Origin: Neoechinorhynchus agilis
Lineage: Eukaryota; Animalia; Acanthocephala
Direction of reading: 5' to 3'
DNA: 64,000 nucleotides
Assembly (NCBI GenBank): GCA_051530055.1
Contig: CM121341.1
Coordinates: forward strand, 3,693,761 to 3,757,760
Position numbers and translations under genes: made by a program. The notes beneath the pieces were generated by a model. It was not told the origin of the DNA, searched no databases, and saw nothing but the letters and a program-made list of their open reading frames with translations. Shown piece after piece: positions 1 to 26,329 of the stretch. How positions within the stretch are numbered: the first letter of the stretch is position 1; the number at the start of each line of letters is the position of its first letter.

Positions 1-3000
1 TTATCCCTAAAAAGATCGTTTATCGCGAAAATCGGATTCAGCGCCTAGGGAAAGTTTAAGCGGTCTTGAACATTCTCTAAATCATTTGAACTTTAGTTTC
101 GAAGAACTTTTATCCCTAAAAAGATCGTTTATCGCGAAAATCGGATTCAGCGCCTAGGGAAAGTTTAAGCGGATATCCGTTTCAAAGTCTGTTTTTTATT
201 TCGATTTAACCTTTCTTGAACATTCTCTAAATAATCTGAACTCGAGTTTCGAAGAACTTTTATCCCTAAAAAGATCGTTTATCGCGAAAATCGGATTCAG
301 CGCCTTGGGAAAGTTTAAGCGGTCTTGAACATTCTCTAAATCATTTGAACTTTAGTTTCGAAGAACTTTTATCCCTAAAAAGATCGTTTATCGCGAAAAT
401 CGGATTCAGCGCCTAGGGAAAGTTTAAGCGGTCTTGAACATTCTCTAAATCATTTGAACTTTAGTTTCAAGAACTTTTATCCCTAAAAAGATCGTTTATC
501 GCGAAAATCGGATTCAGCGCCTAGGGAAAGTTTAAGCGGTTTTGAACATTCTCTAAATCATTTGAACTCTAGTTTCGAAGAACTTTTATCCCTAAAAAGA
601 TCGTTTATCGCGAAAATCGGATTCAGCGCCTAGGGAAAGTTTAAGCGGATATCCGTTTCAAAGTCTGTTTTTTATTTCGATTTAACCTTTTTTGAACATT
701 CTCTAAATCATTTGAACTCGAGTTTCGAAGAACTTTTATCCCTAAAAAGATCGTTTATCGCGAAAATCGGATTCAGCGCCTAGGGAAAGTTTAAGCGGAT
801 ATCCGTTTCAAAGTCTGTTTTTTATTTCGATTTAACCTTTTTTGAACATTCTCTAAATCATTTGAACTCGAGTTTCGAAGAACTTTTATCCCTAAAAAGA
901 TCGTTTATCGCGAAAATCGGATTCAGCGCCTGGGGAAAGTTTAAGCGGATATCCGTTTCAAAGTCTGTTTTTTATTTCGATTTAACCTTTCTTGAACATT
1001 CTCTAAATCATTTGAACTTTAGTTTCGAAGAACTTTTATCCCTAAAAAGATCGTTTATCGCGAAAATCGGATTCAGCGCCTAGGGAAAGTTTAAGCGGAT
1101 ATCCGTTTCAAAGTCTGTTTTTTATTTCGATTTAACCTTTTTTGAACATTCTCTAAATCATTTGAACTCGAGTTTCGAAGAACTTTTATCCCTAAAAAGA
1201 TCGTTTATCGCGAAAACCGGATTCAGCGCCTAGGGAAAGTTTAAGCGGATATCCGTTTCAAAGTCTGTTTTTTATTTCGATTTAACCTTTTTTGAACATT
1301 CTCTAAATCATTTGAACTCGAGTTTCGAAGAACTTTTATCCCTAAAAAGATCGTTTATCGCGAAAATCGGATTCAGCGCCTAGGGAAAGTTTAAGCGGAT
1401 ATCCGTTTCAAAGTCTGTTTTTTATTTCGATTTAACCTTTCTTGAACATTCTCTAAATCATTTGAACTCGAGTTTCGAAGAACTTTTATCCCTAAAAAGA
1501 TCGTTTATCGCGAAAATCGGATTCAGCGCCTGGGGAAAGTTTAAGCGGTCTTGAACATTCTCTAAATAATTTGAACTTTAGTTTCGAAGAACTTTTATCC
1601 CTAAAAAGATCGTTTATCGCGAAAATCGGATTCAGCGCCTAGGGAAAGTTTAAGCGGATATCCGTTTCAAAGTCTGTTTTTTATTTCGATTTAACCTTTT
1701 TTGAACATTCTCTAAATCATTTGAACTCGAGTTTCGAAGAACTTTTATCCCTAAAAAGATCGTTTATCGCGAAAACCGGATTCAGCGCCTGGGGAAAGTT
1801 TAAGCGGTCTTGAACATTCTCTAAATCATTTGAACTTTAGTTTCGAAGAACTTTTATCCCTAAAAAGATCGTTTATCGCGAAAATCGGATTCAGCGCCTA
1901 GGGAAAGTTTAAGCGGATATCCGTTTCAAAGTCTGTTTTTTATTTCGATTTAACCTTTTTTGAACATTCTCTAAATCATTTGAACTCGAGTTTCGAAGAA
2001 CTTTTATCCCTAAAAAGATCGTTTATCGCGAAAATCGGATTCAGCGCTAGGGAAAGTTTAAGCGGATATCCGTTTCAAAGTCTGTTTTTTATTTCGATTT
2101 AACCTTTTTTGAACATTCTCTAAATCATTTGAACTCGAGTTTCGAAGAACTTTTATCCCTAAAAAGATCGTTTATCGCGAAAACGATTCAGCGCCTGGGG
2201 AAAGTTTAAGCGGTCTTGAACATTCTCTAAATCATTTGAACTTTCAAACACCAAAACGCGAAAACCGGATTCAGCGCCTGGGAAAGTTTAAGCGGATATC
2301 CGTTTAAAGTCTGTTTTTTATTTCGATTTAACCTTTTTTGAACATTCTCTAAATCATTTGAACTCGAGTTTCGAAGAACTTTTATCCCTAAAAAGATCGT
2401 TTATCGCGAAAATCGGATTCAGCGCCTAGGGAAAGTTTAAGCGGATATCCGTTTCAAAGTCTGTTTTTTATTTCGATTTAACCTTTTTTGAACATTCTCT
2501 AAATCATTTGAACTCGAGTTTCGAAGAACTTTTATCCCTAAAAAGATCGTTTATCGCGAAAATCGGATTCAGCGCCTAGGGAAAGTTTAAGCGGATATCC
2601 GTTTCAAAGTCTGTTTTTTATTTCGATTTAACCTTTCTTGAACATTCTCTAAATCATTTGAACTCGAGTTTCGAAGAACTTTTATCCCTAAAAAGATCGT
2701 TTATCGCGAAAACCGGATTCAGCGCCTGGGGAAAGTTTAAGCGGTCTTGAACATTCTCTAAATCATTTGAACTTTAGTTTCGAAGAACTTTTATCCCTAA
2801 AAAGATCGTTTATCGCGAAAATCGGATTCAGCGCCTAGGGAAAGTTTAAGCGGATATCCGTTTCAAGTCTGTTTTTTATTTCGATTTAACCTTTTTTGAA
2901 CATTCTCTAAATCATTTGAACTCGAGTTTCGAAGAACTTTTATCCCTAAAAAGATCGTTTATCGCGAAACCGGATTCAGCGCCTGGGGAAAGTTTAAGCG

Positions 3001-6000
3001 GTCTTGAACATTCTCTAAATCATTTGAACTTTAGTTTCGAAGAACTTTTATCCCTAAAAGATCGTTTATCGCGAAAACCGGATTCAGCGCCTGGGGAAAG
3101 TTTAAGCGGATATCCGTTTCAAAGTCTGTTTTTTATTTCGATTTAACCTTTCTTGAACATTCTCTAAATCATTTGAACTTTAGTTTCGAAGAACTTTATC
3201 CCTAAAAAGATCGTTTATCGCGAAAATCGGATTCAGCGCCTAGGGAAAGTTTAAGCGGATATCCGTTTCAAAGTCTGTTTTTTATTTCGATTTAACCTTT
3301 TTTGAACATTCTCTAAATCATTTGAACTCGAGTTTCGAAGAACTTTTATCCCTAAAAAGATCGTTTATCGCGAAAATCGGATTCAGCGCCTAGGGAAAGT
3401 TTAAGCGGATATCCGTTTCAAAGTCTGTTTTTTATTTCGATTTAACCTTTTTTGAACATTCTCTAAATCATTTGAACTCGAGTTTCGAAGAACTTTTATC
3501 CCTAAAAAGATCGTTTATCGCGAAAACCGGATTCAGCGCCTGGGGAAAGTTTAAGCGGTCTTGAACATTCTCTAAATATTTGAACTTTAGTTTCGAAGAA
3601 CTTTTATCCCTAAAAAGATCGTTTATCGCGAAAATCGGATTCAGCGCCTAGGGAAAGTTTAAGCGGATATCCGTTTCAAAGTCTGTTTTTTATTTCGATT
3701 TAACCTTTCTTGAACATTCTCTAAATAATCTGAACTCGAGTTTCGAAGAACTTTTATCCCTAAAAAGATCGTTTATCGCGAAAACCGGATTCAGCGCCTG
3801 GGGAAAGTTTAAGCGGTCTTGAACATTCTCTAAATCATTTGAACTTTAGTTTCGAAGAACTTTTATCCCTAAAAAGATCGTTTATCGCGAAAACCGGATT
3901 CAGCGCCTGGGGAAAGTTTAAGCGGATATCCGTTTTAAAGTCTGTTTTTTATTTCGATTTAACCTTTCTTGAACATTCTCTAAATCATTTGAACTTTAGT
4001 TTCGAAGAACTTTTATCCCTAAAAAGATCGTTTATCGCGAAAATCGGATTCAGCGCCTAGGGAAAGTTTAAGCGGATATCCGTTTCAAAGTCTGTTTTTT
4101 ATTTCGATTTAACCTTTTTTGAACATTCTCTAAATCATTTGAACTCGAGTTTCGAAGAACTTTTATCCCTAAAAAGATCGTTTATCGCGAAAATCGGATT
4201 CAGCGCCTAGGGAAAGTTTAAGCGGATATCCGTTTCAAAGTCTGTTTTTTATTTCGATTTAACCTTTCTTGAACATTCTCTAAATAATCTGAACTCGAGT
4301 TTCGAAGAACTTTTATCCCTAAAAAGATCGTTTATCGCGAAAACGGATTCAGCGCCTGGGAAAGTTTAAGCGGTCTTGAACATTCTCTAAATCATTTGAA
4401 CTTTAGTTTCGAAGAACTTTTATCCCTAAAAAGATCGTTTATCGCGAAAATCGGATTCAGCGCCTAGGGAAAGTTTAAGCGGATATCCGTTTCAAAGTCT
4501 GTTTTTTATTTCGATTTAACCTTTTTTGAACATTCTCTAAATCATTTGAACTCGAGTTTCGAAGAACTTTTATCCCTAAAAAGATCGTTTATCGCGAAAA
4601 CCGGATTCAGCGCCTGGGAAAGTTTAAGCGGTCTTGAACATTCTCTAAATCATTTGAACTTTAGTTTCGAAGAACTTTTATCCCTAAAAAGATCGTTTAT
4701 CGCGAAAATCGGATTCAGCGCCTAGGGAAAGTTTAAGCGGATATCCGTTTCAAAGTCTGTTTTTTATTTCGATTTAACCTTTTTTGAACATTCTCTAAAT
4801 CATTTGAACTCGAGTTTCGAAGAACTTTTATCCTAAAAGATCGTTTATCGCGAAAACCGGATTCAGCGCCTGGGAAAGTTTAAGCGGTCTTGAACATTCT
4901 CTAAATCATTTGAACTTTAGTTTCGAAGAACTTTTATCCCTAAAAAGATCGTTTATCGCGAAAATCGGATTCAGCGCCTAGGGAAAGTTTAAGCGGATAT
5001 CCGTTTCAAAGTCTGTTTTTTATTTCGATTTAACCTTTCTTGAACATTCTCTAAATCATTTGAACTCGAGTTTCGAAGAACTTTTATCCCTAAAAAGATC
5101 GTTTATCGCGAAAATCGGATTCAGCGCCTAGGGAAAGTTTAAGCGGATATCCGTTTCAAAGTCTGTTTTTTATTTCGATTTAACCTTTTTTGAACATTCT
5201 CTAAATCATTTGAACTCGAGTTTCGAAGAACTTTTATCCCTAAAAAGATCGTTTATCGCGAAAATCGGATTCAGCGCCTAGGGAAAGTTTAAGCGGATAT
5301 CCGTTTCAAAGTCTGTTTTTTATTTCGATTTAACCTTTCTTGAACATTCTCTAAATATTTTTGAACATTCTCTAAATCATTTGAACTCGAGTTTCGAAGA
5401 ACTTTTATCCCTAAAAAGATCGTTTATCGCGAAAACCGGATTCAGCGCCTGGGGAAAGTTTAAGCGGTCTTGAACATTCTCTAAATCATTTGAACTTTAG
5501 TTTCGAAGAACTTTTATCCCTAAAAAGATCGTTTATCGCGAAAATCGGATTCAGGGATTGCGGATATCCGTTTCAAAGTCTTTTTTTATTTCGATTTAAC
5601 CTTTTTGAACATTCTCTAAATCATTTGAACTCGAGTTTCGAAGAACTTTTATCCCTAAAAAGATCGTTTATCGCGAAAATCGGATTCAGCGCCTGGGGAA
5701 AGTTTAAGCGGATATCCGTTTCAAAGTCTGTTTTTTATTTCGATTTAACCTTTCTTGAACATTCTCTAAATCATTTGAACTTTAGTTTCGAAGAACTTTT
5801 ATCCCTAAAAAGATCGTTTATCGCGAAAATCGGATTCAGCGCCTAGGGAAAGTTTAAGCGGATATCCGTTTCAAAGTCTGTTTTTTATTTCGATTTAACC
5901 TTTTTTGAACATTCTCTAAATCATTTGAACTCGAGTTTCGAAGAACTTTTATCCCTAAAAAGATCGTTTATCGCGAAAATCGGATTCAGCGCCTAGGGAA

Positions 6001-9000
6001 AGTTTAAGCGGATATCCGTTTCAAAGTCTGTTTTTTATTTCGATTTAACCTTTCTTGAACATTCTCTAAATCATTTGAACTTTAGTTTCGAAGAACTTTT
6101 ATCCCTAAAAAGATCGTTTATCGCGAAAATCGGATTCAGCGCCTAGGGAAAGTTTAAGCGGATATCCGTTTCAAAGTCTGTTTTTTATTTCGATTTAACC
6201 TTTCTTGAACATTCTCTAAATCATTTGAACTCGAGTTTCGAAGAACTTTTATCCCTAAAAAGATCGTTTATCGCGAAAATCGGATTCAGCGCCTAGGGAA
6301 AGTTTAAGCGGATATCCGTTTCAAAGTCTGTTTTTTATTTCGATTTAACCTTTCTTGAACATTCTCTAAATCATTTGAACTCGAGTTTCGAAGAACTTTT
6401 ATCCCTAAAAAGATCGTTTATCGCGAAAATCGGATTCAGCGCCTAGGGAAAGTTTAAGCGGAATTTTAAGTCTGTTTTTATTTCGATTTAACCTTTCTTG
6501 AACATTCTCTAAATCATTTGAACTCGAGTTTCGAAGAACTTTTATCCCTAAAAAGATCGTTTATCGCGAAAATCGGATTCAGCGCCTAGGGAAAGTTTAA
6601 GCGGATATCCGTTTCAAAGTCTGTTTTTTATTTCGATTTAACCTTTCTTGAACATTCTCTAAATCATTTGAACTTTAGTTTCGAAGAACTTTTATCCCTA
6701 AAAAGATCGTTTATCGCGAAAATCGGATTCAGCGCCTAGGGAAAGTTTAAGCGGATATCCGTTTCAAAGTCTGTTTTTTATTTCGATTTAACCTTTTTTG
6801 AACATTCTCTAAATCATTTGAACTCGAGTTTCGAAGAACTTTTATCCCTAAAAAGATCGTTTATCGCGAAAATCGGATTCAGCGCCTTGGGAAAGTTTAA
6901 GCGGTCTTGAACATTCTCTAAATCATTTGAACTTTAGTTTCGAAGAACTTTTATCCCTAAAAAGATCGTTTATCGCGAAAATCGGATTCAGCGCCTAGGG
7001 AAAGTTTAAGCGGATATCCGTTTCAAAGTCTGTTTTTTATTTCGATTTAACCTTTTTTGAACATTCTCTAAATCATTTGAACTCGAGTTTCGAAGAACTT
7101 TTATCCCTAAAAAGATCGTTTATCGCGAAAATCGGATTCAGCGCCTGGGGAAAGTTTAAGCGGATATCCGTTTCAAAGTCTGTTTTTTATTTCGATTTAA
7201 CCTTTCTTGAACATTCTCTAAATCATTTGAACTTTAGTTTCGAAGAACTTTTATCCCTAAAAAGATCGTTTATCGCGAAAATCGGATTCAGCGCCTGGGG
7301 AAAGTTTAAGCGGATATCCGTTTCAAAGTCTGTTTTTTATTTCGATTTAACCTTTCTTGAACATTCTCTAAATCATTTGAACTCGAGTTTCGAAGAACTT
7401 TTATCCCTAAAAAGATCGTTTATCGCGAAAATCGGATTCAGCGCCTGGGGAAAGTTTAAGCGGATATCCGTTTCAAAGTCTGTTTTTTATTTCGATTTAA
7501 CCTTTCTTGAACATTCTCTAAATCATTTGAACTTTAGTTTCGAAGAACTTTTATCCCTAAAAAGATCGTTTATCGCGAAAATCGGATTCAGCGCCTAGGG
7601 AAAGTTTAAGCGGATATCCGTTTCAAAGTCTGTTTTTTATTTCGATTTAACCTTTTTTGAACATTCTCTAAATCATTTGAACTCGGTTTCGAAGAACTTT
7701 TATCCCTAAAAAGATCGTTTATCGCGAAAATCGGATTCAGCGCCTAGGGAAAGTTTAAGCGGATATCCGTTTCAAAGTCTGTTTTTTATTTCGATTTAAC
7801 CTTTTTTGAACATTCTCTAAATCATTTGAACTCGAGTTTCGAAGAACTTTTATCCCTAAAAAGATCGTTTATCGCGAAAATCGGATTCAGCGCCTAGGGA
7901 AAGTTTAAGCGGATATCCGTTTCAAAGTCTGTTTTTTATTTCGATTTAACCTTTTTTGAACATTCTCTAAATAATCTGAACTCGAGTTTCGAAGAACTTT
8001 TATCCCTAAAAAGATCGTTTATCGCGAAAACCGGATTCAGCGCCTAGGGAAAGTTTAAGCGGATATCCGTTTCAAAGTCTGTTTTTTATTTCGATTTAAC
8101 CTTTTTTGAACATTCTCTAAATCATTTGAACTCGAGTTTCGAAGAACTTTTATCCCTAAAAAGATCGTTTATCGCGAAAATCGGATTCAGCGCCTGGGGA
8201 AAGTTTAAGCGGATATCCGTTTCAAAGTCTGTTTTTTATTTCGATTTAACCTTTCTTGAACATTCTCTAAATCATTTGAACTTTAGTTTCGAAGAACTTT
8301 TATCCCTAAAAAGATCGTTTCTCGCGAAAATCGGATTCAGCGCCTAGGGAAAGTTTAAGCGGATATCCGTTTCAAAGTCTGTTTTTTATTTCGATTTAAC
8401 CTTTCTTGAACATTCTCTAAATAATCTGAACTCGAGTTTCGAAGAACTTTTATCCCTAAAAAGATCGTTTATCGCGAAAACCGGATTCAGCGCCTGGGGA
8501 AAGTTTAAGCGGTCTTGAACATTCTCTAAATCATTTGAACTTTAGTTTCGAAGAACTTTTATCCCTAAAAAGATCGTTTATCGCGAAAATCGGATTCAGC
8601 GCCTAGGGAAAGTTTAAGCGGATATCCGTTTCAAAGTCTGTTTTTTATTTCGATTTAACCTTTTTTGAACATTCTCTAAATCATTTGAACTCGAGTTTCG
8701 AAGAACTTTTATCCCTAAAAAGATCGTTTATCGCGAAAATCGGATTCAGCGCCTAGGGAAAGTTTAAGCGGATATCCGTTTCAAAGTCTGTTTTTTATTT
8801 CGATTTAACCTTTTTTGAACATTCTCTAAATCATTTGAACTCGAGTTTCGAAGAACTTTTATCCCTAAAAAGATCGTTTATCGCGAAAACGGATTCAGCG
8901 CCTGGGAAAGTTTAAGCGGTTTGAACATTCTCTAAATATTTGAACTAGTTTCGAAGAACTTTTATCCCTAAAAAGATCGTTTATCGCGAAAATCGGATTC

Positions 9001-9772
9001 AGCGCCTAGGGAAAGTTTAAGCGGATATCCGTTTCAAAGTCTGTTTTTTATTTCGATTTAACCTTTTTTGAACATTCTCTAAATCATTTGAACTCGAGTT
9101 TCGAAGAACTTTTATCCCTAAAAAGATCGTTTATCGCGAAAACCGGATTCAGCGCCTAGGGAAAGTTTAAGCGGATATCCGTTTCAAAGTCTGTTTTTTA
9201 TTTCGATTTAACCTTTTTTGAACATTCTCTAAATCATTTGAACTCGAGTTTCGAAGAACTTTTATCCCTAAAAAGATCGTTTATCGCGAAAACCGGATTC
9301 AGCGCCTGGGAAAGTTTAAGCGGTTTGAACATTCTCTAAATATTGAACTAGTTTCGAAGAACTTTTATCCCTAAAAAGATCGTTTTCGCGAAAACGGATT
9401 CAGCGCCTAGGGAAAGTTTAAGCGGATATCCGTTTCAAAGTCTGTTTTTTATTTCGATTTAACCTTTCTTGAACATTCTCTAAATAATCTGAACTCGAGT
9501 TTCGAAGAACTTTTATCCCTAAAAAGATCCCAAAACACCTTTAAGCGGATATCCGTTTAAAAGTCTGTTTTTTATTTCGATTTAACCTTTTTTGAACATT
9601 CTCTAAATCATTTGAACTCGAGTTTCGAAGAACTTTTATCCCTAAAAAGATCGATTATCGCGAAAACCGGATTCAGCGCCTAGGGAAAGTTTAAGCGGAT
9701 ATCCGTTTCAAAGTCTGTTTTTTATTTCGATTTAACCTTTCTTGGACATTCTCTAAATCATGTGAGCTCGAG
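1..9772. repeat. Tandem satellite array 1, 150-bp unit with 109-bp deletion variant (roughly 70 copies; open at window start)
   Basis: TTGAACATTCTCTAAATC recurs at 66, 216 and 325 (spacings 150 and 109). The short unit lacks ATATCCGTTTCAAAGTCTGTTTTTTATTTCGATTTAACCTT. The last, diverged copy ends ~9772, 18 nt before the POLA2 ATG. Confidence 0.98.
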
Positions 9773-9790
9773 GGCAAATCGTGCATTCAG

Positions 9791-12520
9791 ATGGACCTTG
9801 ATAGCGATCTTTCGTTGTACGGAATCGAGTTTGATGGGGATTCGAGTGTTCAAAAGTATAAGGAGATTGTAGACGAATTTGGAAATGAACGATCGATTAA
9901 TGTGTTTGTCTCGTTATGCATAGGTCCAACAAAGACCGTTATTAATGATGAGGTCATTGCAAAGGCACTTAGAAAGGTTTCAAAAATGTTTTTGCAAATC
10001 GAATCATATTTGTATTTAGTTGAGAACGTCCAAAATTCGCAATGAACAGGTTATCGAAGCTCTACCAAGGCATAAACGGTATTCAAAGCCTAAACTCTTT
10101 GATGTAAACCTCAATGTTCTTGGCAATAATGGAGATTCAAAGGCGTTTGAAGTCGGGCTCATTGAAGAGTTCAATGTGAATTATGACGAGGAATCGTTCG
10201 AACGTTGTGGTATTGAAGATTTTACGATCGACGATGAACATCAATGGTCAAAATTTAAGTGAGATAGACAGTTTCATTGAGTTTGGTAGTGTTTCTTAGA
10301 TCAATATCTTAGCATAATTAATGCTTTCAAATTAAAATCGTGGTTTTCAGACGTAGAGCGTTCATTTGATTTAAGTCGACGCTAAAATTAAATTGTATTT
10401 ATGAAAAATTTTACTAAGGGAGTAATACAAATTCCGAACCCTAGCCATTACGACAATTGATGTCCTCAATCCAAGCTCCGCAGAATTTTTAATTAAAAAA
10501 GATTTCGATTACTATCTTCGTCGGAAACAATACTTTCTTTTGGTATTTAAGTTCACTAATTTATTACCGATATTTCACGTCGGATAATTCCGACATTTTC
10601 TCAAGGTTTGTTATTCTAAAATTGTTTCGAGATCAAATTTAAAGTTATAAAGCTGTTTTTCGCAGTGAGAGATCGTTAGCAAAAAGATAATTGTGCTATT
10701 GAAGACTTTTACGATCGACGATGAACATCAATGGTCAAAATTATCCGGGGTTGGAAAACTACCAAAAGAAAGTTACGAGGGCAGCGAACTAAAAAAGTTA
10801 TCATCGAGAATTGTCGTCGGAGTGAATTTGATTCGAGTTTGGCGACGTTTTCCCCCAGATTGTTGTTGATGTTGATCCTCCTATGTTTTTTGCTTACCTC
10901 TTTGGTTATATCTACAAATTAAGCTAAAGTCAAAATTGGACTATAGGCTTGGATCCGCGGGTTCGCCAAGCGATTCAGAAAGGGAATACTCGCTGCATCC
11001 TCGGGTTTTTTTTATGGAAAAGGACTTTTCACCGTTTCCATCGGAACTTTCAGCGCTTGGATATTTTCAAAAATTTCTAAAGTGTTAGATCAAAACTTAA
11101 TTTACTTATTGACGCATCCTTTGCCATGAACATGTCTTCTCATAAAGATGGAATCCTGTTTATGCCACAAGACGAAGCCCGCCATCGGGCCTATGGTAAG
11201 CTTTCCATTTTTTAATCAACATCGTACATCTCTATGAACACGATTAGTTTTGAACCAACTGATAGATGAAGCTGAGTCAGATTTCAAGTTAAATTTCGGT
11301 GAATTAACTGAAGATATTGCTTTGTGTGGTCGTATCGTGAGCATGGACGAAACATCAACCGATCGAATGTCATTTGAATCAGTTGGATTACAGTGCTCAT
11401 TGAGACGAGGTGACGGAGCTTGCGTTCTCTTAGATTTTTCAGTGTTCAAAGGAAGCTTAAGTTTGTTTCCTGGACAGGTTAGAAAAGTTTAATACGTTCG
11501 AGAGAAAAACCCGTCAAATAGTTAATAGCATGCATTGGACATGCATCCGATGGGTGTATTAAAGTTAAAAAAATTATAGAGGTTCACCTTTTTTCTCGAT
11601 ACAAAAAGCTAAAATAACGTACATTTTAAGAGGTCATTACCTGTAAAAGAAGCCAGTTCCTTACCTTCTGGTCTACGAATTGGAGTGGCTTGTGGGCCCT
11701 TTCTTAAGCGATCAGTTAATGGCGTTAAAACGATCAATTTTGACAACATTGGTCGTCTAATTTTAACTATGATATCCTCAACAGTTGATGTTGTATTCCT
11801 GGTAAGATTGTTTTTATCGCCTCAAAACTCTTTCCACTTTTAAAAAGATTGGTCCATTTGTACAAGAAAGATCAACGAGCCTTCAAGTAACGTACGACGA
11901 GTGTTTTGCAGCTCTCATGGAGATCATCCAAGCTCACATGCTGCCTAAAACTCACGTATTCATTGTTCCTTCAATTGAAGACGCTGCACATCAATTGCCA
12001 GTGTTTCCACAACCACCGTTCCCGCAATTTTCTCATTTAAACAACATTCATATGCTTCCAAATCCGTGCGTTTTGACTTTAAAGACCAAGGATAAGAATC
12101 TTTTGCGTGTTGGAGTGACCAGTGTTGATGTCATAAAGAATATCTCAGCTGAGGAAATCAATCGGTAAGCTCTAAATTATGGAGGAAATTTTTGTGAAAC
12201 AAAATACAAATAGAAACATGTCGTCCACTCACAGTGATCGAATCAGTCGTCTTATTGAACATCTCAATAAACAACGCTGCTTTTATCCAATATACCCACC
12301 ACAAATATCCGTGGACTATAATTATTGGACAAACACGATTCTCACGCAATCGGACATTCTACTTCTTCCTTCCGATCTTAAACACTTTTGCAGAAACATC
12401 AACGGATGCACCACGTTCAATCCAGGAAGGTTTTTGAGGAGAGACAAACCAGAAATATTTTCCATAATCACGGTGAATAAAGCAGGGATTTCGGCGAAAG
12501 TTCTTAAAGTTGAAGATTAA
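9791..12520 (+). CDS. POLA2: DNA polymerase alpha subunit B (p68/p70). Exons 9791-9976, 10020-10209, 11148-11195, 11248-11477, 11522-11581, 11631-11801, 11848-12164, 12214-12520 (1509 nt, 502 aa)
   Basis: Hand-spliced GT-AG model stays in frame. Motifs match POLA2/Pol12: IALCGRI, LDFS..LSLFPGQ, GVACGPF, VFL-IGPFV, IVPSIEDAAHQLPVFPQPPF, HLNKQRCFYPIYPP, LLLPSDLKHF, TFNPGRF. The intron 2 donor (10210) is the least certain boundary. Confidence 0.9.
10735..10900 (+). mobile_element. Possible degenerate LINE ORF2 3' remnant inside POLA2 intron 2
   Basis: Broken frames give LENYQKKVTRAA and LKKLSSRIVVGVNLIRVW, loosely like the CR1/L2 C-terminal LE.VQRRATR...L..L..RR..DLI.V.K. Confidence 0.3.
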
Positions 12521-12724
12521 ATCTTATAAAGTTGTCACCAGTATCCGGGTCTACACGATGAACTTTTAGATTTTTGCAATCATCTCGATCCGTTTACATT
12601 TTTATTAATCTGGGCTCAATAATACTTTTTCAATTCCAACCTTGATAGTTGTTAAATCGTGAATGTAGGTCAGTTCTTGTAACAATTAACGGTTTATTTA
12701 TTTATTATCAAGGCCTCATGATCT

Positions 12725-15700
12725 TGTTTTTCTTTCATATTGAGTTGATTGGTCTTGCGACATCTTCTTTTTGGCCTCTCGCCTATATTCCTTTTTGGGA
12801 GCCTTTCGGCTGACTTGCACACATCGGAGGCGCTCAGCTGCACTCCAAGGGACAGGGCCAACCCCCTTTGGGGCCGATGGGCGACCTCAAACGTGACCCC
12901 AATACTTTCAGCAGCCTCGAACACCCGCGGAACCCAGCGTCCGGTGGCGTTGAACCATCGACATATCGAGCGCATTATGAACCCGCAAGCGGCCACTTGG
13001 TCCTATGGGCGGTTTATTTATTTGATCACACACGAATACTGTTAGCTTATGAGTTGTTTTCTTCAGATTGAGTTGATTGGTCTTGCGACATCTTCTTTTG
13101 GGCCTCTCGGCTATATAAATTTTTGGGAGCCTTTCGGCTGACTTGCACACATCGGAGGCGCTTAGCTGCACTCGAAGGGACAGGGCCAACCCCGTTTGGG
13201 GCCGATGGGCGACCTCAAACGTGACCCCAATCCCTTCAGCAGCCTCGAACACCCGCGGAATTCCGCGACCGATGGCGTTGAACTATCGACATAACGAGCG
13301 CATTATGGACGCGCACGCCGCCACTTGGCCCTATGTGTGGTTTATTTATTTGATCACACACGAATACTGTTAGCGTATGAGTTGTTTTCTTCAGATTGAG
13401 TTGATTGGTCTTGCGACATCTTCTTTTCGGCCTCTCGGCTATATAAATTTTTGGGAGCCTTTTGACTGACTTGCAAACATCGGAGGCGCTTAGCTGCACT
13501 CGAAGGGAAAGGGCCAACCCCCTTTGGGGCCGATGAGCGATCTCAAACCTTAATCTCACCCTTTTCAGCAGCCTCGAACACCAGCGGAACCCAGCGACCG
13601 GTGGCGTTGAACCATCGACATATCGAGCGCATTATGAACGCGCAAGCGGCCACTTGGTCCTATGTGTGGTTTATTTATTTGATCACACACGAATACTGTT
13701 AGTTTATGAGTTGTTTTCTTCAGATTGAGTTGATTGGTCTTGCGACATCTTCTTTTTTGCCTCTCGCCTGTATTCATTTTTGGGAGCCTTTCGGCTGACT
13801 TGCACACATCGGAGGCGCTTAGCTGCACTCGAAGGGACAGGGCCAACCCCCTTTGGGGCCGATGGGCGACCTCAAACCTTATTCTCACCCTTTTCAGCAG
13901 CCTCGAACACCGGCGGAACCCAGCGACCGGTGGCGTTGAACCATCGAGATATCGAGCGCATTATGAACGCGCAAGCGGCCACTTGGTCCTATGTGCGGTT
14001 TATTTATTTGATCACACACGAATACTGTTAGTTTATGAGTTGTTTTCTTCAGATTGAGTTGATTGGTCTTGCGACATCTTCTTTTGGGCCTCTCGGCTAT
14101 ATTCATTTTTGGGAGCCTTTCGGCTGACTTGCACACATCGGAGGCGCTAAGCCGCACTCGAAGGGACAGGGCCAACCCCCTTTGGGGCCGATGGGTTACC
14201 TCAAACCTGACCCACACTTTTTTCAGCAGCCTCGAACACCCGCGGAACCAAGCGACCGGTGGCCATATCGAGCGCATTATGAACGCGCACGCCGCCACTT
14301 GGTCCTATGTGTGGTTTATTTATTTGATCACACACGAATACTGTTAACTTATGAGTTGTTTTCTTCAGATTGAGTTGATTAGTCTTGCGACATCTTCTTT
14401 TGAGCCTCTCGGCTATATTCATTTTTGGGAGCCTTTCGGCTGACTTGCACACATCGGAGGACCTCAGCCGCACACGAAAGGACAGGGCCAACCCCCTTTG
14501 GGGCCGATGGGTTACCTCAAACCTGACCCACACTTTTTTCAGCAGCCTCGAACACCCGCGGAACCAAGCGACCGGTGGCCATATCGAGCGCATTATGAAC
14601 GCGCACGCCGCCACTTGGTCCTATGTGTGGTTTATTTATTTGATCACACACGAATACTGTTAGCTTATTACTTTTCTTCATATTGAGTTGATTAGTCTTG
14701 CGACATCATCTTTTGGGCTTCTCGCCTATATTCCTTTTTGGGAGCCTTTCGGCTGACTGGCACACATCGGAGGCGCTCAGCCGCACTCGAAAGGACAGGG
14801 CCAACCCCCTTTGGGGCCGATGGGCGACCTCAAACGTGACCCCAATCCTTTCAGCAGCCTCGAACACCCGCGGAATTCAGCGACCGATGGCGTTGAACTA
14901 TCGACATAACGAGCGCATTATGAACGCGCAAGCGGCCACTTGGTCCTATGTGTGGTTTATTTATTTGACCACACAACAATACTGTTAGCTTATGAGTTGT
15001 TTTCTTCAGATTGAGTTGATTGGTCTTGCGACATCTTCTTTTGGGCCTCTCGGCTATATAAATTTTTGGGAGCCTTTCGGCTGACTTGCACACATCGGAG
15101 GCGCTTAGCTGCACTCCTAAGGACAGGGCCAACCCCCTTTGGGGCCGATGGGCGACCTCAAACCTGAATCTCATTCTTTTCAGCAGCCTCGAACACCGGC
15201 GGAACCCAGCGACCGGTGGCGTTGAACCATCGACATATCGAGCGCATTATGAACGCGCACGCCGCAACTTGGTCCTATGTGTGGTTTATTTATTTGATCA
15301 CACACGAATACTGTTAGTTTATGAGTTGTTTTCTTCAGATTGAGTTGATTGGTCTTGCGACATCTTCTTTTTTGCCTCTCGCCTATATTCATTTTTGGGA
15401 GCCTTTCGGCTGACTTGCACACATCGGAGGCGCTTAGCTGCACTCGAAAGGACAGGGCCAACCCCCTTTGGGGCCGATGGGCGACCTCAAACCTTAATCT
15501 CACCCTTTTCAGCAGCCTCGAACACCAGCGGAACCCAGCGACCGGTGGCGTTGAACCATCGACATATCGAGCGCATTATGAACGCGCACGCGGCCACTGG
15601 GTCCTATGTGTTGTTTATTTATTTGACCACACACGAATACTGTTAGCTTATGAGTTGTTTTCTTCAGATTGAGTTGATTGGTCTTGCGACATCTTCTTTT

Positions 15701-17182
15701 TTGCCTCTCGCCTATATTCCTTTTTGGGAGCCTTTCGGCTGACTTGCACACATCGGAGGCGCTTAGCTGCACTCGAAGGGACAGGGCCAACCCCCTTTGG
15801 GGCCGATGGGCGACCTCAAACCTGAATCTCACCCTTTTCAGCAGCCTCGAACACCGGCGGAACCCAGCGACCGGTGGCGTTGAACCATCGACATATCGAG
15901 CGCATTATGAACGCGCAAGCGGCCACTTGGTCCTATGTGTGGTTTATTTATTTGATCACACACGAATACTGTTAGCTTATGAGTTGTTTTCTTCAGATTG
16001 AGTTGATTGGTCTTGCGACATCTTCTTTTTTGCCTCTCGCCTATATTCATTTTTGGGAGCCTTTCGGCTGACTTGCACACATCGGAGGCGCTAAGCCGCA
16101 CTCGAAGGGACAGGGCCAACCCCCTTTGGGGCCGATGGGTTACCTCAAACCTGACCCACACTTTTTTCAGCAGCCTCGAACACCCGCGGAACCAAGCGAC
16201 CGGTGGCCATATCGAGCGCATTATGAACGCGCACGCCGCCACTTGGTCCTATGTGTGGTTTATTTATTTGATCACACACGAATACTGTTAGCTTATGAGT
16301 TGTTTTCTTCATATCGAGTTGATTAGTCTTGCGACATCATCTTTTGGGCTTCTCGCCTATATTCCTTTTTGGGAGCCTTTCGACTGACTTGCACACATCC
16401 GAGGCGCTTAGTTGCACTCGAAGGGAAAGGGCCAACCCCCTTTGGGGCCGATGAGCGACCTCAAACCTTAATCTCACCCTTTTCAGCAGCCTCGAACACC
16501 CGCGGAACCAAGCGAGCGGTGGCGTTGAACCATCGATATATCGAGCGCATTATGAACGCGCACGCGGCCACTGGGTCCTATGTGTTGTTTATTTATTTGA
16601 CCACACACGAATACTGTTAGCTTATGAGTTGTTTTCTTCAGATTGAGTTGATTGGTCTTGCGACATCTTCTTTTGGGCCTCTCGGCTATATTCATTTATG
16701 GGAGCCTTTCGGATGACTTGCACACATCGGAGGCGCTCAGCCGCACTCGAAAGGACAGGGCCAACCCCCTTTGGGGCCGATGGGCGACCTCAAACGTGAC
16801 CCCAATCCTTTCAGCAGCCTCGAACACCCGCGGAATTCAGCGACCGATGGCGTTGAACTATCGACATAACGAGCGCATTATGAACGCGCAAGCGGCCACT
16901 TGGTCCTATGTGTGGTTTATTTATTTGACCACACAACAATACTGTTAGCTTATGAGTTGTTTTCTTCAGATTGAGTTGATTGGTCTTGCGACATGTTCTT
17001 TTGGGCCTCTCGGCTATATTCATTTTTGGGAGCCTTTCATCTGACTATCACACATCGGAGGCGCTTAGCTGCACTCGAAGATACAAAGCCGACCCTCTTT
17101 GGGGCCGATGGGTTATCTAAAACGTGACCCCTACCCTTTCAGCAGCCTCGAACACCCGTGGAACCCAGCGACCGGTGGCGTT
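12725..17182 (-). repeat. Tandem array 2, 329-bp unit (316-bp variant), ~13.5 copies, each with a tRNA-headed SINE-like core on the minus strand
   Basis: GAGTTGATTGGTCTTGCGAC recurs every 329 bp (identical ORF starts at 15349, 15678, 16007). The 316-bp variants lack GTTGAACCATCGA. The rightmost copy is cut at ~17182 by a Penelope-like fragment. Confidence 0.96.
15351..15604 (-). ncRNA. Representative tRNA-derived SINE-like / putative Pol III element (75-nt tRNA-like head at 15604-15530 plus hairpin-rich body)
   Basis: Minus strand reads GGACCCAG-TGGCCGCGT-GCGCG[TTCATAA]TGCGC-TCGATATGTC-GATGG[TTCAACG]CCACC-GGTCG-CTGGGTTCC. This gives an acceptor-like stem, an anticodon-like arm (CAT) and a T-loop/B-box, but no D-arm. 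Downstream hairpins are AGCC-GAAA-GGCT and GCC-GAGA-GGC. Confidence 0.55.
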
Positions 17183-17189
17183 TATGCTT

Positions 17190-17480
17190 CTCAGCATCGA
17201 TCCCCTGTTTCATCACCCAAGGATGATGACAGTGTCTCGATGCATGACTATTCTTTTTCGGCACGGTTTGCGAATACGATATGTCGTCAAGGATCCGGTG
17301 GAACTGTCTATCGCCGAGGTACTATGCATGGTGTTTTGACAGATAGTCCTGGAGCTCAAGAACTACTGAACGCTACAAACGTACTAACCATGGTGCTCTA
17401 ATGACGTCCACTTCAATCTACCCCACAGATCCCTGAAGAAGCCGTAATACGGCGAAATCTAGGAATAAAAATAAAGAGTT
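17190..17480 (+). mobile_element. Penelope-like element 3' fragment (GIY-YIG C-terminal remnant plus pseudo-LTR)
   Basis: VVKDPVELSIAEVLCMVF*QIVLELK resembles the PLE endonuclease tail (L.I.E...I....P.LN). It is followed by a minimal hammerhead and tandem AATAAA at 17464-17476. Confidence 0.55.
17430..17464 (+). ncRNA. Minimal type I hammerhead ribozyme (Penelope pLTR type)
   Basis: TCC-CTGAAGA-A-GCCG[TAATA]CGGC-GAA-ATCT-A-GGA. Core CUGANGA/GAAA is intact, stem I is TCC/GGA, stem II is 4 bp, stem III is near-palindromic ATCT, and the cleavage triplet is CUA. Confidence 0.75.
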
Positions 17481-17789
17481 GTCTTGAATCCAGTTCGCTT
17501 AGGTGTCTATTTAAATAATTTCTTTTATCTAGTCTGTAACGCCATTTTCATCGATTCGCCACATACAAAAAAAAGCAGCCAAGATAACGCGTCCTCGATG
17601 CCGGCAATTTTAAGAGAATAATTTAAAAAAACTAAAAGAAAATTAGCTTCTTTAAAATCCCTTTTGATTTTTCAGCATAATCATCCCACATTTGCCGAAC
17701 GCCTATTTAATAGAAGTAAAAATTACTTGGTTTCTTGTCCGGCAACACAATGTCGTATTTGCTTGGTAAAGGTCGTCTCGGATTTCTCG

Positions 17790-20700
17790 GCGTTTTTTCC
17801 AGTCCGCAAACGTAAATCCGAACAAATGAATCAATTTTCGAGTTTTTTTCTTTGTTCTCATTAGGCAGAATTTTAACACGGAAGAATGCATAAAATCAAT
17901 TTTTAATTACGGCGATCGAGTAGAAATATTAAAATTTCTAGCGATATGCGAATACGGCAAATGGACGCGTTTTTCCCAATTCGTTGACGTAAATCCGAAT
18001 GAATCAATTTTCGTGTATTTTCTTTGTTCTCCTGGACACGAATGACGTCACCTCAACTCCGACGCGAAAATACGGTTGACTTTGTTGAAGGCAGAATTTT
18101 AACACGGAAGAATGCATAAAATCAATTTTTAATGACGACGATCGAGTAGAAATATTAAAATTTCTAGCGAAATGCGAATACGGCACATGGACGCGTTTTT
18201 CCCAATTCGTTGACGTAAATCCGAATGAATCAATTTTGGTGTACTTTCTTTGCTCTCCTGGGCACGAATTACGTCACCTCAACTCCGACGCGAAAATTCG
18301 GTTGACTTTGTTGAAGGCAGAATTTTAACACGGAAGAATGCATAAAATCAATTTTTAATGACGACGATCGAGTAGAAATATTAAAATTTCTAGCGAAATG
18401 CGAATACGGCACGTGGACGCGATTTTTCCCATTCGTTGACGTAAATCCGAATGAATCAATTTTCGTGTACTTTCTTTGCTCTCCTGTGCACGAAAATACG
18501 GTTGACTTTGTTGAAGGCAGAATTTTAGCACGGAAGAATGCATAAAATCAATTTTTAATTACGACGATCGAGTAGAAATATTAAAATTTCTAGCGATATG
18601 CGAATACGGCACATGGACGCGATTTCCCAATTCGTTGCGTAAATCCGATGAATCAATTTTCGTGTACTTTCTTTGCTCTCCTGGGCACGAATTACGTCAC
18701 CTCAACTCCGACGCGAAAATTCGGTTGACTTTGTTGAAGGCAGAATTTTAACACGGAAGAATGCATAAAATCAATTTTTAATGACGACGATCGAGTAGAA
18801 ATATTAAAATTTCTAGCGAAATGCGAATACGGCACGTGGACGCGATTTTTCCCATTCGTTGACGTAAATCCGAATGAATCAATTTTCGTGTACTTTCTTT
18901 GCTCTCCTGTGCGAAAATACGGTTGACTTTGTTGAAGGCAGAATTTTAACACGGAAGAATGCATAAAATCAATTTTAATTACGACGATCGAGTAGAAATA
19001 TTAAAATTTCTAGCGATATGCGAATACGGCACATGGACGCGATTTTCCCAATTCGTTGGCGTAAATCCGAATGAATCAATTTTCGTGTACTTTCTTTGTT
19101 CTCCTTGGCCGAATACGTCACCTCAACTCCGACGCGAAAATACGGTTGACTTTGTTGAAGGCAGAATTTTAACACGGAAGAATGCATAAAATCAATTTTT
19201 AATTACGGCGATCGAGTAGAAATATTAAAATTTCTAGCGATATGCGAATACGGCACATGGACGCGTTTTTCCCAATTCGTTGGCGTAAATCCGAATGAAT
19301 CAATTTTCGTGTACTTTCTTTGCTCTCCTGGGCACGAATTACGTCACCTCAACTCCGACGCGAAAATACGGTTGACTTTGTTGAAGGCAGAATTTTAACA
19401 CGGAAGAATGCATAAAATCAATTTTTAATGACGACGATCGAGTAGAAATATTAAAATTTCTAGCGAAATGCGAATACGGCACATGGACGCGTTTTTCCCA
19501 ATTCGTTGACGTAAATCCGAATGAATCAATTTTCGTGTACTTTCTTTGCTCTCCTGGGCACGAATTACGTCACCTCAACTCCGACGCGAAAATTCGGTTG
19601 ACTTTGTTGAAGGCAGAATTTTAACACGGAAGAATGCATAAAATCAATTTTTAATGACGACGATCGAGTAGAAATATTAAAATTTCTAGCGAAATGCGAA
19701 TACGGCACATGGACGCGATTTTTCCCATTCGTTGACGTAAATCCGAATGAATCAATTTTCGTGTACTTTCTTTGCTCTCCTGTGCACGAAAATACGGTTG
19801 ACTTTGTTGAAGGCAGAATTTTAACACGGAAGAATGCATAAAATCAATTTTTAATTACGACGATCGAGTAGAAATATTAAAATTTCTAGCGATATGCGAA
19901 TACGGCATGGACGCGTTTCCCAATTCGTTGACGTAAATCCGAATGAATCAATTTTCGTGTACTTTCTTTGCTCTCCTGGGCACGAATTACCACCCACCCA
20001 CGAAAATCGGTTGACTTTGTTGAAGGCAGAATTTTAACACGGAAGAATGCATAAATCAATTTTTAATACAAACAAACTCCTCCTGCCGAAAATACGGTTG
20101 ACTTTGTTGAAGGCAGAATTTTAACACGGAAGAATGCATAAAATCAATTTTTAATTACGACGATCGAGTAGAAATATTAAAATTTCTAGCGAAATGCGAA
20201 TACGGCACATGGACGCGTTTTTCCCAATTCGTTGGCGTAAATCCGAATGAATCAATTTTCGTGTACTTTCTTTGCTCTCCTGGGCACGAATTACGTCACC
20301 TCAACTCCGACGCGAAAATTCGGTTGACTTTGTTGAAGGCAGAATTTTAACACGGAAGAATGCATAAAATCAATTTTTAATGACGACGATCGAGTAGAAA
20401 TATTAAAATTTCTAGCGAAATGCGAATACGGCACGTGGACGCGATTTTTCCCATTCGTTGACGTAAATCCGAATGAATCAATTTTCGTGTACTTTCTTTG
20501 CTCTCCTGTGCACGAAAATACGGTTGACTTTGTTGAAGGCAGAATTTTAACACGGAAGAATGCATAAAATCAATTTTTAATTACGACGATCGAGTAGAAA
20601 TATTAAAATTTCTAGCGATATGCGAATACGGCACATGGACGCGATTTTCCCAATTCGTTGACGTAAATCCGAATGAATCAATTTTCGTGTACTTTCTTTG

Positions 20701-22042
20701 CTCTCCTGGGCACGAATTACGTCACCTCAACTCCGACGCGAAAATTCGGTTGACTTTGTTGAAGGCAGAATTTTAACACGGAAGAATGCATAAAATCAAT
20801 TTTTAATGACGACGATCGAGTAGAAATATTAAAATTTCTAGCGAAATGCGAATACGGCACGTGGACGCGATTTTTCCCATTCGTTGACGTAAATCCGAAT
20901 GAATCAATTTTCGTGTACTTTCTTTGCTCTCCTGTGCACGAAAATACGGTTGACTTTGTTGAAGGCAGAATTTTAACACGGAAGAATGCATAAAATCAAT
21001 TTTTAATGACGACGATCGAGTAGAAATATTAAAATTTCTAGCGAAATGCGAATACGGCACATGGACGCGATTTTCCCAATTCGTTGGCGTAAATCCGAAT
21101 GAATCAATTTTCGTGTACTTTCTTTGCTCTCCTGTGCACGAATGACGTCACCTCAACTCCGACGCGAAAATACGGTTGACTTTGTTGAAGGCAGAATTTT
21201 AACACGGAAGAATGCATAAAATCAATTTTTAATTACGACGATCGAGTAGAAATATTAAAATTTCTAGCGATATGCGAATACGGCACATGGACGCGTTTTT
21301 CCCAATTCGTTGACGTAAATCCGAATGAATCAATTTTCGTGTACTTTCTTTGCTCTCCTGTGCACGAATTACGTCACCTCAACTCCGACGCGAAAATACG
21401 GTTGACTTTGTTGAAGGCAGAATTTTAACACGGAAGAATGCATAAAATCAATTTTTAATGACGACGATCGAGTAGAAATATTAAAATTTCTAGCGAAATG
21501 CGAATACGGCACATGGACGCGATTTTCCCAATTCGTTGGCGTAAATCCGAGTGAATCAATTTTCGTGTACTTTCTTTGCTCTCCTGTGCACGAATTACGT
21601 CACCTCAACTCCGACGCGAAAATACGGTTGACTTTGTTGAAGGCAGAATTTTAACACGGAAGAATGCATAAAATCAATTTTTAATGACGACGATCGAGTA
21701 GAAATATTAAAATTTCTAGCGAAATGCGAATACGGCACATGGACGCGATTTTCCCAATTCGTTGGCGTAAATCCGAGTGAATCAATTTTCGTGTACTTTC
21801 TTTGCTCTCCTGTGCACGAATTACGTCACCTCAACTCCGACGCGAAAATACGGTTGACTTTGTTGAAGGCAGAATTTTAACACGGAAGAATGCATAAAAT
21901 CAATTTTTAATGACGACGATCGAGTAGAAATATTAAATTTTCTAGCGAAATGCGAATACGGCACATGGACGCGATTTTACCAATTCGTTGGCGTAAATCC
22001 GAATGAATCAATTTTCGTGTATTTTCTTTGTTCTCCTTGGCC
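17790..22042. repeat. Tandem array 3, 226-bp and 200-bp units (~19-20 copies)
   Basis: GGCAGAATTTTAACACGG occurs at 18090, 18316 and 18516. The 200-bp unit lacks 26 bp between two CGAA words. The first copy (~17790-17863) is degenerate, and the last ends 20 nt before the RAD51 ATG. Confidence 0.97.
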
Positions 22043-22062
22043 AGGTTTATCGATATTTTTAG

Positions 22063-23157
22063 ATGGCGACAAAGCGTGCAGAACGTAAAGCGGCAGCTTT
22101 GGCACAACAAGAAGCAGCAACGCCTGTGCTTGAGACGAGTGCTCCATTGTCAGAGCAGCGACTTGATCAGGACATTTCGGTATGTGGTCCGATTCCAATT
22201 AGTCGTCTATCATCGATTCCACAATCGGGCATAAGCAGTGCAGACGTTCGTAAATTAGAGGATGCCGGATTCCATACGATAGAGTCTGTAGCGTTTACGC
22301 CTAAGAAATGTCTGATACAAATAAAAGGAATAAGCGAAGTGAAGGCAGACAAGATCTTGTCAGAAGCTCAAAAACTGATTCCGATGGGTTTTACTACAGC
22401 TAGCGAGATTCATAAAAAGCGTGCTGATATGATTCAGTTGACGACTGGTTGTAAGGATTTGGATAAACTTTTAGGCGGTGGGATAGAGACTGGATCTCTT
22501 ACTGAGATATTCGGAGAGTTTCGTACTGGGAAGACTCAATTGTGCCATATGTTGGCAGTGACTTGTCAATTACCGATCGATATGGGCGGTGGAGAAGGAA
22601 AGGCGATTTATATTGATACCGAGAACACGTTTCGTCCTGAGAGATTACTTGCTATTGCAGATAAGTTTAATCTATGTGGTCCGGATGTATTAGATAATGT
22701 GGCTGTTGCTAGAGCTTATAATACAGATCATCAACAACAACTCCTTCTTCAGGCTTCAGCGATGATGTGCGAATCGAGATACGCTTTATTAGTCGTCGAT
22801 AGCTCTACTGCTCTATATAGAACTGATTTCTCAGGTCGAGGAGAATTGAGTGCAAGGCAAATGCATTTGGCTCGGTTTCTTCGGGCTCTGATGAGACTTG
22901 CGGACGAATTCGGAGTTGCTGTCGTTATAACGAATCAAGTTGTTAGTCAAGTGGACGGTGCGGCCAGTATGTTCTGTGGAGATTCCAAGAAACCGATCGG
23001 TGGAAATATCATGGCTCATGCTTCAACTACGAGACTTTACTTGAGAAAAGGAAGAGGAGAAAATAGAATTTGTAAGATCTATGACAGTCCATGTTTGCCT
23101 GAAGCAGAAGCAATGTTTGCTATTGGTTCAGACGGAATACAAGACGTCAGCGATTGA
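22063..23157 (+). CDS. RAD51: DNA repair recombinase RAD51, intronless, 364 aa
   Basis: N-terminal HhH region ([20 protein letters not shown]), Walker A GEFRTGKT, Walker [30 protein letters not shown] and [16 protein letters not shown] are diagnostic of RAD51 rather than DMC1. C-terminal [15 protein letters not shown]. Confidence 0.98.
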
Positions 23158-26100: not shown

Positions 26101-26329
26101 GTTAGCGTAAGATTTCCGTCAAGTTCCTGTTTTATCTGTAGAGAGAAAAGGTGGTTTTTGACAGCATAAAGCGTGACTAGTGAATTTATCTTCATTGCTG
26201 GTTTACTGGCAATGTAGGTCTATCGAGAAGTTTCAAGATGAATATTTTTTGACCATACACGGCGCTGAATTATGGGCACACAGCCAATTGATTTCGATCA
26301 GGAAAGCGCTGGTCTTCGCTCAGTGCGCA

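Follow-up and report, generated by a model that had tools for sequence, protein, structure and literature searches.

Two satellite arrays end about 20 nt before the start codons of RAD51 and of a putative POLA2 amino-terminal gene in the acanthocephalan Neoechinorhynchus agilis

In the eoacanthocephalan Neoechinorhynchus agilis, a parasite of fish, two satellite arrays on contig CM121341.1 (assembly GCA_051530055.1) run up to within about 20 nt of a start codon, and the question that this locus raises is what such arrays are and how the adjoining genes could be expressed. The window analysed here is a stretch of 64,000 nt (positions 3,693,761 to 3,757,760 of the forward strand) that holds eight tandem arrays, numbered 1 to 8. 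Array 1 ends in front of an ATG at position 9791 that was first read as the start of POLA2, and array 3 ends in front of RAD51. A first-pass annotation, made from the letters alone, pointed out that both arrays contain the word CGCGAAAA and proposed that the proximal promoter of each gene had been amplified into a gene-specific satellite carrying tens of cell-cycle factor sites. The explanation that we favour, with moderate confidence, is that arrays 1 and 3 are intergenic satellites specific to their locus, each of which was amplified where it stands and grew as far as a splice acceptor, and that the word which they share is probably coincidental.

The arrays were delimited with Tandem Repeats Finder (TRF) and by our own dissection into units, and together the eight make up about 46% of the window. 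Arrays 1 and 3 both have the properties of satellites, with TRF periods of 150, 109, 259 and 409 bp in the former and 226, 200 and 426 bp in the latter, at 95–98% matches. Array 1 consists of about 72 units, shows higher-order repetition every 259 and 409 bp, and has a GC content of 35% and a CpG observed/expected ratio of 2.07. It extends at least 210 bp beyond the start of the window, giving a total length of at least 9.98 kb. Array 3 is 4.2 kb long and consists of 20 units with a higher-order period of 426 bp, a GC content of 38.5% and a CpG observed/expected ratio of 2.18. The deletion variants and the higher-order periods indicate that the arrays evolved by unequal exchange. No further copies of either unit were found by blastn elsewhere in the window, and with a word size of 7 the units of arrays 1 and 3 showed no similarity to each other or to the rest of the window, which agrees with their description as two unrelated satellites.

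The gene-side edges were also as first described. The homology of array 1 stopped at 9772 (...CTCGAG), 18 nt ahead of the ATG at 9791, and the homology of array 3 stopped at 22041-22045, 18–22 nt before the RAD51 ATG at 22063. Both arrays lie directly upstream of their genes, are co-oriented with them and replace the proximal upstream region. From this it had been concluded that no room was left for a unique promoter, a point that need not matter. Both ATGs stand directly after a pyrimidine-rich AG, cattcag/ATG at 9791 and tttttag/ATG at 22063, of the 3′ splice-site consensus type, and an acceptor-like AG would let the transcript start anywhere upstream, within or beyond the array. Everything upstream of the acceptor would be absent from the mRNA and may thus be repetitive, so the missing promoter room is no paradox. 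In Pomphorhynchus laevis, whose RAD51 begins MATK as does that of N. agilis, the start codon has the same arrangement (ttattag/ATG), and a perfect 46-bp × 2 tandem duplication at the RAD51 locus (L002 5906-6001) ended 3 nt before the ATG. A repeat that abuts an acceptor and an ATG thus recurs in a second acanthocephalan. In bdelloid rotifers, more than 50% of the transcripts undergo spliced-leader trans-splicing (PMC1925144). The arrangement of the genomic letters suggests that the mRNA 5′ ends of the gene at 9791 and of RAD51 are made by splicing at that AG.

Each array would have originated on the spot, through tandem duplication and unequal exchange of the sequence immediately upstream of the gene, and would have spread until it reached sequence that the gene cannot lose, about 18 nt from the ATG. 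The mRNA 5′ end would be formed by splicing at the AG, either by spliced-leader trans-splicing as in bdelloid rotifers or by removal of an intron in the 5′ untranslated region (5′-UTR). Transcription would start upstream of the AG; the simplest location is the terminal unit, or the last few units, of the array, since these stand in for the whole proximal upstream region. In this geometric sense promoter DNA has probably been amplified. The promoter would be located either in the terminal units or upstream of the arrays. If array 3 lies within an outron or an intron, the unique spacer between arrays 2 and 3 is a candidate upstream promoter or first exon for RAD51, and a POLA2 promoter upstream of array 1 would be more than 9.98 kb away. 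We lean towards initiation within the last units because the POLA2 introns measure only about 45–150 nt and the genome is compact.

The same acceptor-like AGs would also fit arrays that are passive passengers in a long outron or 5′-UTR intron, with the promoter and any first exon upstream of the whole array (in the unique spacer for RAD51, outside the window for POLA2) and no promoter activity in the units. That the AG abuts both ATGs and the RAD51 ATG of P. laevis speaks for this, as does the unique spacer upstream of array 3, and the unit identity of 96–98% points to a recent or homogenised expansion, such that a recently lengthened intron or outron could be tolerated. However, with introns as short as those of POLA2 in a compact genome, an outron or intron of 4.3 kb or of more than 10 kb would be exceptional. 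Moreover, no upstream exon is annotated, and the more than 9.98 kb over which array 1 extends show no unique DNA. We consider it unlikely that the arrays are passengers of this kind. The features on which the argument turns are collected in Table 1.

Table 1. Positions of the arrays, genes and sequence elements in the 64-kb window
Feature	Position	Strand or orientation	Description
Array 1	1..9772	+	Satellite, 150-bp units and 109-bp deletion variant; TRF, unit dissection
Last CGCGAAAA of array 1	9659..9666	+	125 nt upstream of the ATG at 9791; context TATCGCGAAAACCGG
Unique bases between array 1 and ATG	9773..9790	+	18 nt, ggcaaatcgtgcattcag, ending in acceptor-like cattcag
142-aa gene, model P0121	9791..10262	+	Exons 9791-9978 and 10022-10262; source annotation
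384-aa POLA2 part	11126..12520	+	OB and phosphoesterase domains, 6 exons; source annotation
Array 2	12728..17182	+	329-bp units, GC 51%, without CGCGAAAA
Unique spacer between arrays 2 and 3	17183..17789	+	About 600 bp, the only unique DNA there
Array 3	~17790..22045	+	Satellite, 226-bp units and 200-bp deletion variant; TRF, unit dissection
Last CGCGAAAA of array 3	21841..21848	+	215 nt upstream of the RAD51 ATG
Unique bases before RAD51	22046..22062	+	Hold the TATCGATA palindrome; end in acceptor-like tttttag
RAD51	22063..23157	+	Intact intronless 364-aa open reading frame, Pfam Rad51 E = 1e-131
Array 4	44503-46724	Opposite to array 2	357-bp units
Arrays 7-8	56345-61685		Array 7: 182-bp units, 27.7 copies, GC 28%; array 8: 119-bp units

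The word that had drawn attention to the two arrays, CGCGAAAA, occurred 83 times in the window compared to 7.4 expected occurrences; array 1 accounted for 70 of these and array 3 for 12, and the remaining one was at 63408. It had been reported in every unit of array 1, and this was correct for 70 of the 72 pieces; one unit had CGCGAAA only and another had lost the site. Among the 20 units of array 3, 12 carried ACGCGAAAAT and eight were without CGCGAAAA. The observation that the 200-bp units keep CACGAAAA was borne out and could be traced to their 26-bp deletion, which turns CGCGAAAA into CACGAAAA. There were no matches in arrays 2 and 4–8, again as reported, so within the window the word is not equally common in the other arrays.

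The longest word common to the units of arrays 1 and 3 was the 9-mer CGCGAAAAT. A common word of at least 9 nt was also found in 53% of 2000 dinucleotide-shuffled pairs of the two units and in 13 of 26 unrelated pairs among the units of the eight arrays, and the array 3 unit had a 10-mer in common with array 6 and an 11-mer in common with array 8. If the word had been specified beforehand, the probability that both shuffled units contain it would be 0.016 for CGCGAAA and 0.003 for CGCGAAAA. The honest significance of the shared word lies between the pre-specified and the any-word values and is weak, because the word was first chosen as shared and then matched to factor sites. Its sharing is probably a coincidence between two CpG-rich units. 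In array 1 the eight columns of the motif were invariant, and the same was true of 48 of 143 other 8-column windows, which gives no sign of a special constraint on the motif.

These counts bear on the proposal that the arrays are the genes' own promoters, amplified in tandem, in which the CGCG box of the units (TTTTCGCG) is a working E2F-type G1/S site and copy number tunes expression in S phase. That POLA2 and RAD51 belong to the classical E2F targets of other animals speaks for it. So do the positions of the arrays, which abut the ATGs, are co-oriented with the genes and occur nowhere else in the window, the CpG-rich units, the presence of the word in most units of both arrays and its absence from the six others, and the low probability of CGCGAAA in both shuffled units if that core is taken as pre-specified. 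However, the word was picked afterwards, and sharing any 9-mer has a probability of 0.53. Furthermore, the array 1 motif is no better conserved than its surroundings, and array 3 units from which the word was deleted were nonetheless retained.

The identity of the word as an E2F site fared no better. No exact match to TTTSSCGC was present in arrays 1 and 3; the best matches, TTTCGCGA and TTTCGCGT, reached 7 of 8 positions and were missing the terminal C/G. The sole exact TTTSSCGC in the window was at 63409, with no recognisable gene adjoining. The first-pass annotation had also likened CGCGAAA and ACGCGT to the yeast Swi4/6 cell-cycle box (SCB) and MluI cell-cycle box (MCB). The motifs themselves are there: ACGCGT occurred seven times in array 3, all units of which carried ACGCG(A/T)TTTTCC and most (T/G)ACGTCA. 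To our knowledge, SCB and MCB are sites of the fungal factors SBF and MBF, which have no animal counterpart, and the analogy does not apply to animals. Neither CGCGAAA nor TTTCGCG nor TTTSSCGC was found in the 6 kb upstream of RAD51 in P. laevis, a weak test given how divergent the species are. This is the only other acanthocephalan genome, and its RAD51, the best relative, has at most 81% protein identity, so DNA-level promoter alignment is impossible and the locus served for motif presence and gene-start layout alone. What stands of the proposal is that the arrays are abutting, co-oriented and unique within the window; what does not is the E2F argument, as the shared word is statistically ordinary and no canonical E2F site is present. 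We judge it improbable that the arrays act as amplified E2F-type promoters.

Several observations weigh against the explanation that we favour and were considered together. If CGCGAAA is taken as an E2F-like core specified beforehand, it would have a probability of only about 0.016 of occurring in both units, and all copies of the motif point in the same direction relative to the genes. The word, which has two CpGs in it, is scarce outside the arrays: the 34.7 kb of non-array sequence held one CGCGAAAA and five CGCGAAA. CpG richness is highest in arrays 1 and 3 (2.07 and 2.18, compared to 1.16 in non-array DNA and 0.59 in the array adjacent to an FCP1-like phosphatase gene), and the arrays next to DNA-synthesis and repair genes have both the CpG richness and the CGCG boxes whereas the FCP1-adjacent array has neither, a comparison of two arrays with one. 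Among the arrays, exact CGCGAAA was confined to 1 and 3, although CGCG tetramers occur in array 2 as well; no weight can be given to the contrast with numbers this small. Finally, no report of spliced-leader trans-splicing in acanthocephalans was found in the literature searched.

The most far-reaching combination of these ideas would be kilobase-scale, gene-specific promoter satellites that drive essential S-phase genes in a highly reduced parasite genome, with an E2F-like CGCG box in each unit, mRNAs trans-spliced at the AG that abuts the ATG, and copy number serving as a heritable and fast-evolving dial for the dosage of replication and repair genes. We regard this as very doubtful. On the present evidence CGCGAAAA is at most a candidate cell-cycle factor site, and selection on copy number is a conjecture.

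The geometry of the array-gene junctions depends on the assembly, and the arrays could have been misplaced or mis-sized by the hybrid assembler so that the junctions are not real. GCA_051530055.1 is a MaSuRCA hybrid assembly for which Oxford Nanopore (ONT) reads were the main source, alongside Illumina and a few HiFi reads; Hi-C served for scaffolding, and gaps were closed (PMC12690905). Array 1 exceeds the minimum read length of 5 kb. In contrast, the arrays do not look like collapsed runs of identical copies: unit variants are mixed irregularly with partial units, and the copies at the edges are divergent. The partial units at the array ends pass gradually into unique sequence, and the junctions have no Ns. 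A repeat that abuts the ATG of the same gene was moreover found in an independent species, P. laevis. An artefact seems to us highly improbable.

The identity of the gene behind array 1 was less straightforward than that of RAD51. In the source annotation, made with BRAKER on the repeat-masked genome (PMC12690905), the ATG at 9791 starts a 142-aa gene that is separate from the POLA2 model starting at 11126. The product of the latter, 384 aa long and named 'hypothetical protein ACOME3_000757 [Neoechinorhynchus agilis]', has the Pfam domains PF22062 and PF04042 and about 30% identity to POLA2 of other eukaryotes, and is without the approximately 200 N-terminal residues found in other POLA2 proteins. 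For the 142-aa product, no homologue beyond itself was found in Pfam (E <= 10), by phmmer against the PDB or in a HMMER search of 1.8 billion representatives. An hhalign comparison with a profile of eight POLA2 N-terminal domains gave a weak match (E = 0.0045, probability 7.7%) in a collinear alignment of residues 3-65 with profile positions 8-73. It is plausible from this alignment that the open reading frame (ORF) at 9791 encodes the putative POLA2 N-terminal domain (PF08418) and a linker. The placement of the POLA2 start at 9791 is thus backed by the weak collinear match, but it conflicts with the separate gene model and is not helped by the searches for homologues.

POLA2 seems to be split over two annotated genes of 142 and 384 aa (window 9791-12520). 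In the 860 nt between them, the end of the last exon of the 142-aa gene occurs a second time with slight differences (~10212-10255 and ~10698-10742, a 1-nt indel apart), and this second copy stays open in frame for about another 45 codons. The duplicated exon end may represent an exon that was annotated wrongly, one that is used alternatively, or a gene that has been disrupted.

Next, the adjacency of arrays and genes was viewed across the window, which is very gene-poor compared to the rest of the genome: the annotated genes in its 64 kb are the 142-aa gene, the 384-aa POLA2 part, RAD51, a 143-aa ORF and the FCP1-like phosphatase, compared to one gene per ~3.4 kb genome-wide. The genome is 46.2 Mb in size with 13,655 genes (PMC12690905). 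CM121341.1 is a 19.4-Mb chromosome and the sole contig on record for the RAD51 ORF of the window. Almost all of the intergenic DNA consists of tandem arrays that are putatively specific to their locus, and much of the remaining DNA is fragments of non-long-terminal-repeat (non-LTR) retrotransposons. Array 2 begins 208 nt past the POLA2 stop codon, and of the 9.5-kb spacer between POLA2 and RAD51, 91% belongs to arrays 2 and 3. The FCP1-like gene, on the minus strand, is the only other ordinary gene in the window and not a G1/S gene, and no further gene was called between 44.5 and 64 kb. It, too, has arrays on either side: the edge of array 7 is 175 nt away from the annotated ATG (or 120 nt away from an in-frame ATG that comes earlier), and 200 nt separate the stop codon from array 6. 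The adjacency of arrays is therefore the rule in this window and not peculiar to S-phase genes. What is special about the 142-aa gene and RAD51 is how close the arrays come, and the likely reason is the acceptor bases before the ATG. Two ORFs at 46817 and 51092 had looked like further array-adjacent genes; they are absent from the annotation and were not counted.

Tandem copies upstream of genes are known from promoters with variable number tandem repeats (VNTRs) and from the rDNA intergenic spacers of Drosophila and Xenopus, which are arrays of duplicated promoters and enhancers. Arrays 1 and 3 resemble them in that tandem copies lie directly upstream of a gene and are able to multiply factor sites; in the rDNA spacers each unit has a promoter copy. 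The rDNA genes, however, are multicopy and transcribed by RNA polymerase I (Pol I), and the units of arrays 1 and 3 are putative promoter units at most. VNTRs at RNA polymerase II (Pol II) promoters usually have units of 1–60 bp in few copies, unlike the two arrays. Like the E2F/DP sites of G1/S genes, the array word has a T-run followed by a CGCG core and lies upstream of two genes whose counterparts in other animals are E2F targets; unlike those sites (TTTSSCGC) it matches 7 of 8 positions without an exact consensus, is not conserved in P. laevis and would be a candidate binding site at most.

The closest known counterparts are gene-proximal satellites in euchromatin. They have been described in Tribolium castaneum, where TCAST1 and, in the gene-rich arms, tandem-repeat families with units of about 170 bp are examples (PMC4537270, PMC4675708, PMC11610590), and in Drosophila, where the 1.688 satellite is a further gene-proximal example (PMC7642928). 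An influence on neighbouring genes has been proposed for the satellites in both groups (PMC4537270, PMC4675708, PMC11610590, PMC7642928). Arrays 1 and 3 are like them in having head-to-tail units of 100–400 bp, kilobase-sized arrays and higher-order periods, and in lying next to or within genes. In contrast to those dispersed families, neither array has a second copy in the window, and both end about 18 nt from a start codon. The outrons of trans-spliced genes in nematodes and bdelloid rotifers (PMC1925144 for rotifers) offer a parallel at the gene edge, with a pyrimidine-rich AG at the ATG and a near-zero genomic 5′-UTR, and the mature mRNA of the array-adjoining genes would likewise have no need of the upstream sequence. 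Outrons described to date usually measure hundreds of bases, while arrays 1 and 3 measure kilobases, and the AGs here are putative acceptors.

If the units have promoter activity, the locus would offer a rare case in which Pol II genes have an equivalent of the spacer-promoter arrays of rDNA, and a natural system in which repeat copy number can be related to the expression of single-copy essential genes. If the trans-splicing reading is true, Acanthocephala would for the first time show signs of spliced-leader trans-splicing. Even on a neutral reading, the locus shows a satellite expansion that reaches 18 nt from an ATG, and the AG before the ATG is a hint that acanthocephalan mRNA 5′ ends arise by splicing, of which the literature searched contained no report. 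Satellites, spliced leaders, E2F, RAD51 and POLA2 were not mentioned in the N. agilis genome paper (PMC12690905), its supplement or a related paper. RNA-seq from 74 N. agilis worms has been published (PMC12690905).

Further observations concern array 3 and the bases that follow it. Two units of array 3 contained a perfect palindrome of the cAMP response element (CRE), TGACGTCA (17990-18050 and 21010-21030), most other 226-bp units contained TTACGTCA, and each unit had a 7-bp inverted repeat, TAGAAAT...ATTTCTA. The CRE-type words and the inverted repeat may be sites of factors other than E2F. The unique bases that separate array 3 from the RAD51 acceptor contain, at 22048-22055, the only copy in the window of TATCGATA, a palindrome identical to the DNA replication-related element (DRE) bound by DREF at Drosophila replication genes. 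The match may be due to chance.

Arrays 2 and 4 have in common a GC-rich core (about 230 bp, ~80% identity) that points in opposite directions in the two arrays, and by this similarity they are one repeat family arrayed at two loci. The copy of the core in array 4 holds a box that resembles the B box of RNA polymerase III promoters, GGTTCAAGTCC, which suggests an origin of the family from a short interspersed element (SINE) or a tRNA, although Rfam and ARAGORN gave no match. Across all sequences submitted to it (the whole window, one array 4 unit and the P. laevis locus), Rfam returned no matches, and ARAGORN found no tRNAs; with these blanks, known RNA genes and spliced-leader RNA arrays were ruled out as the identity of the arrays. 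Array 7 grades into array 8, and more than 20 10-mers in common mark the two as variants of one family.

CpG was not depleted across the window (1-64000), with an observed/expected ratio of 1.16 in non-array DNA and 1.33 overall, which fits an N. agilis genome in which CpG methylation is scarce or absent. The retrotransposon fragments formed a cluster on both strands (24600-43300 and 47480-49050) with RVT_1 reverse transcriptase and endonuclease domains, and two of the reverse transcriptase ORFs, 24797-25477(-) and 39007-40425(+), were near-duplicates. A short GH47 fragment, from the C-terminal end, was located at 41702-42034. In P. laevis, a 304-bp satellite with 3.5 copies (L002 11103-12158) gave no Rfam match at the gathering threshold; its unit contains CTGATGAG...GACGAAAC, the conserved words of the hammerhead ribozyme.

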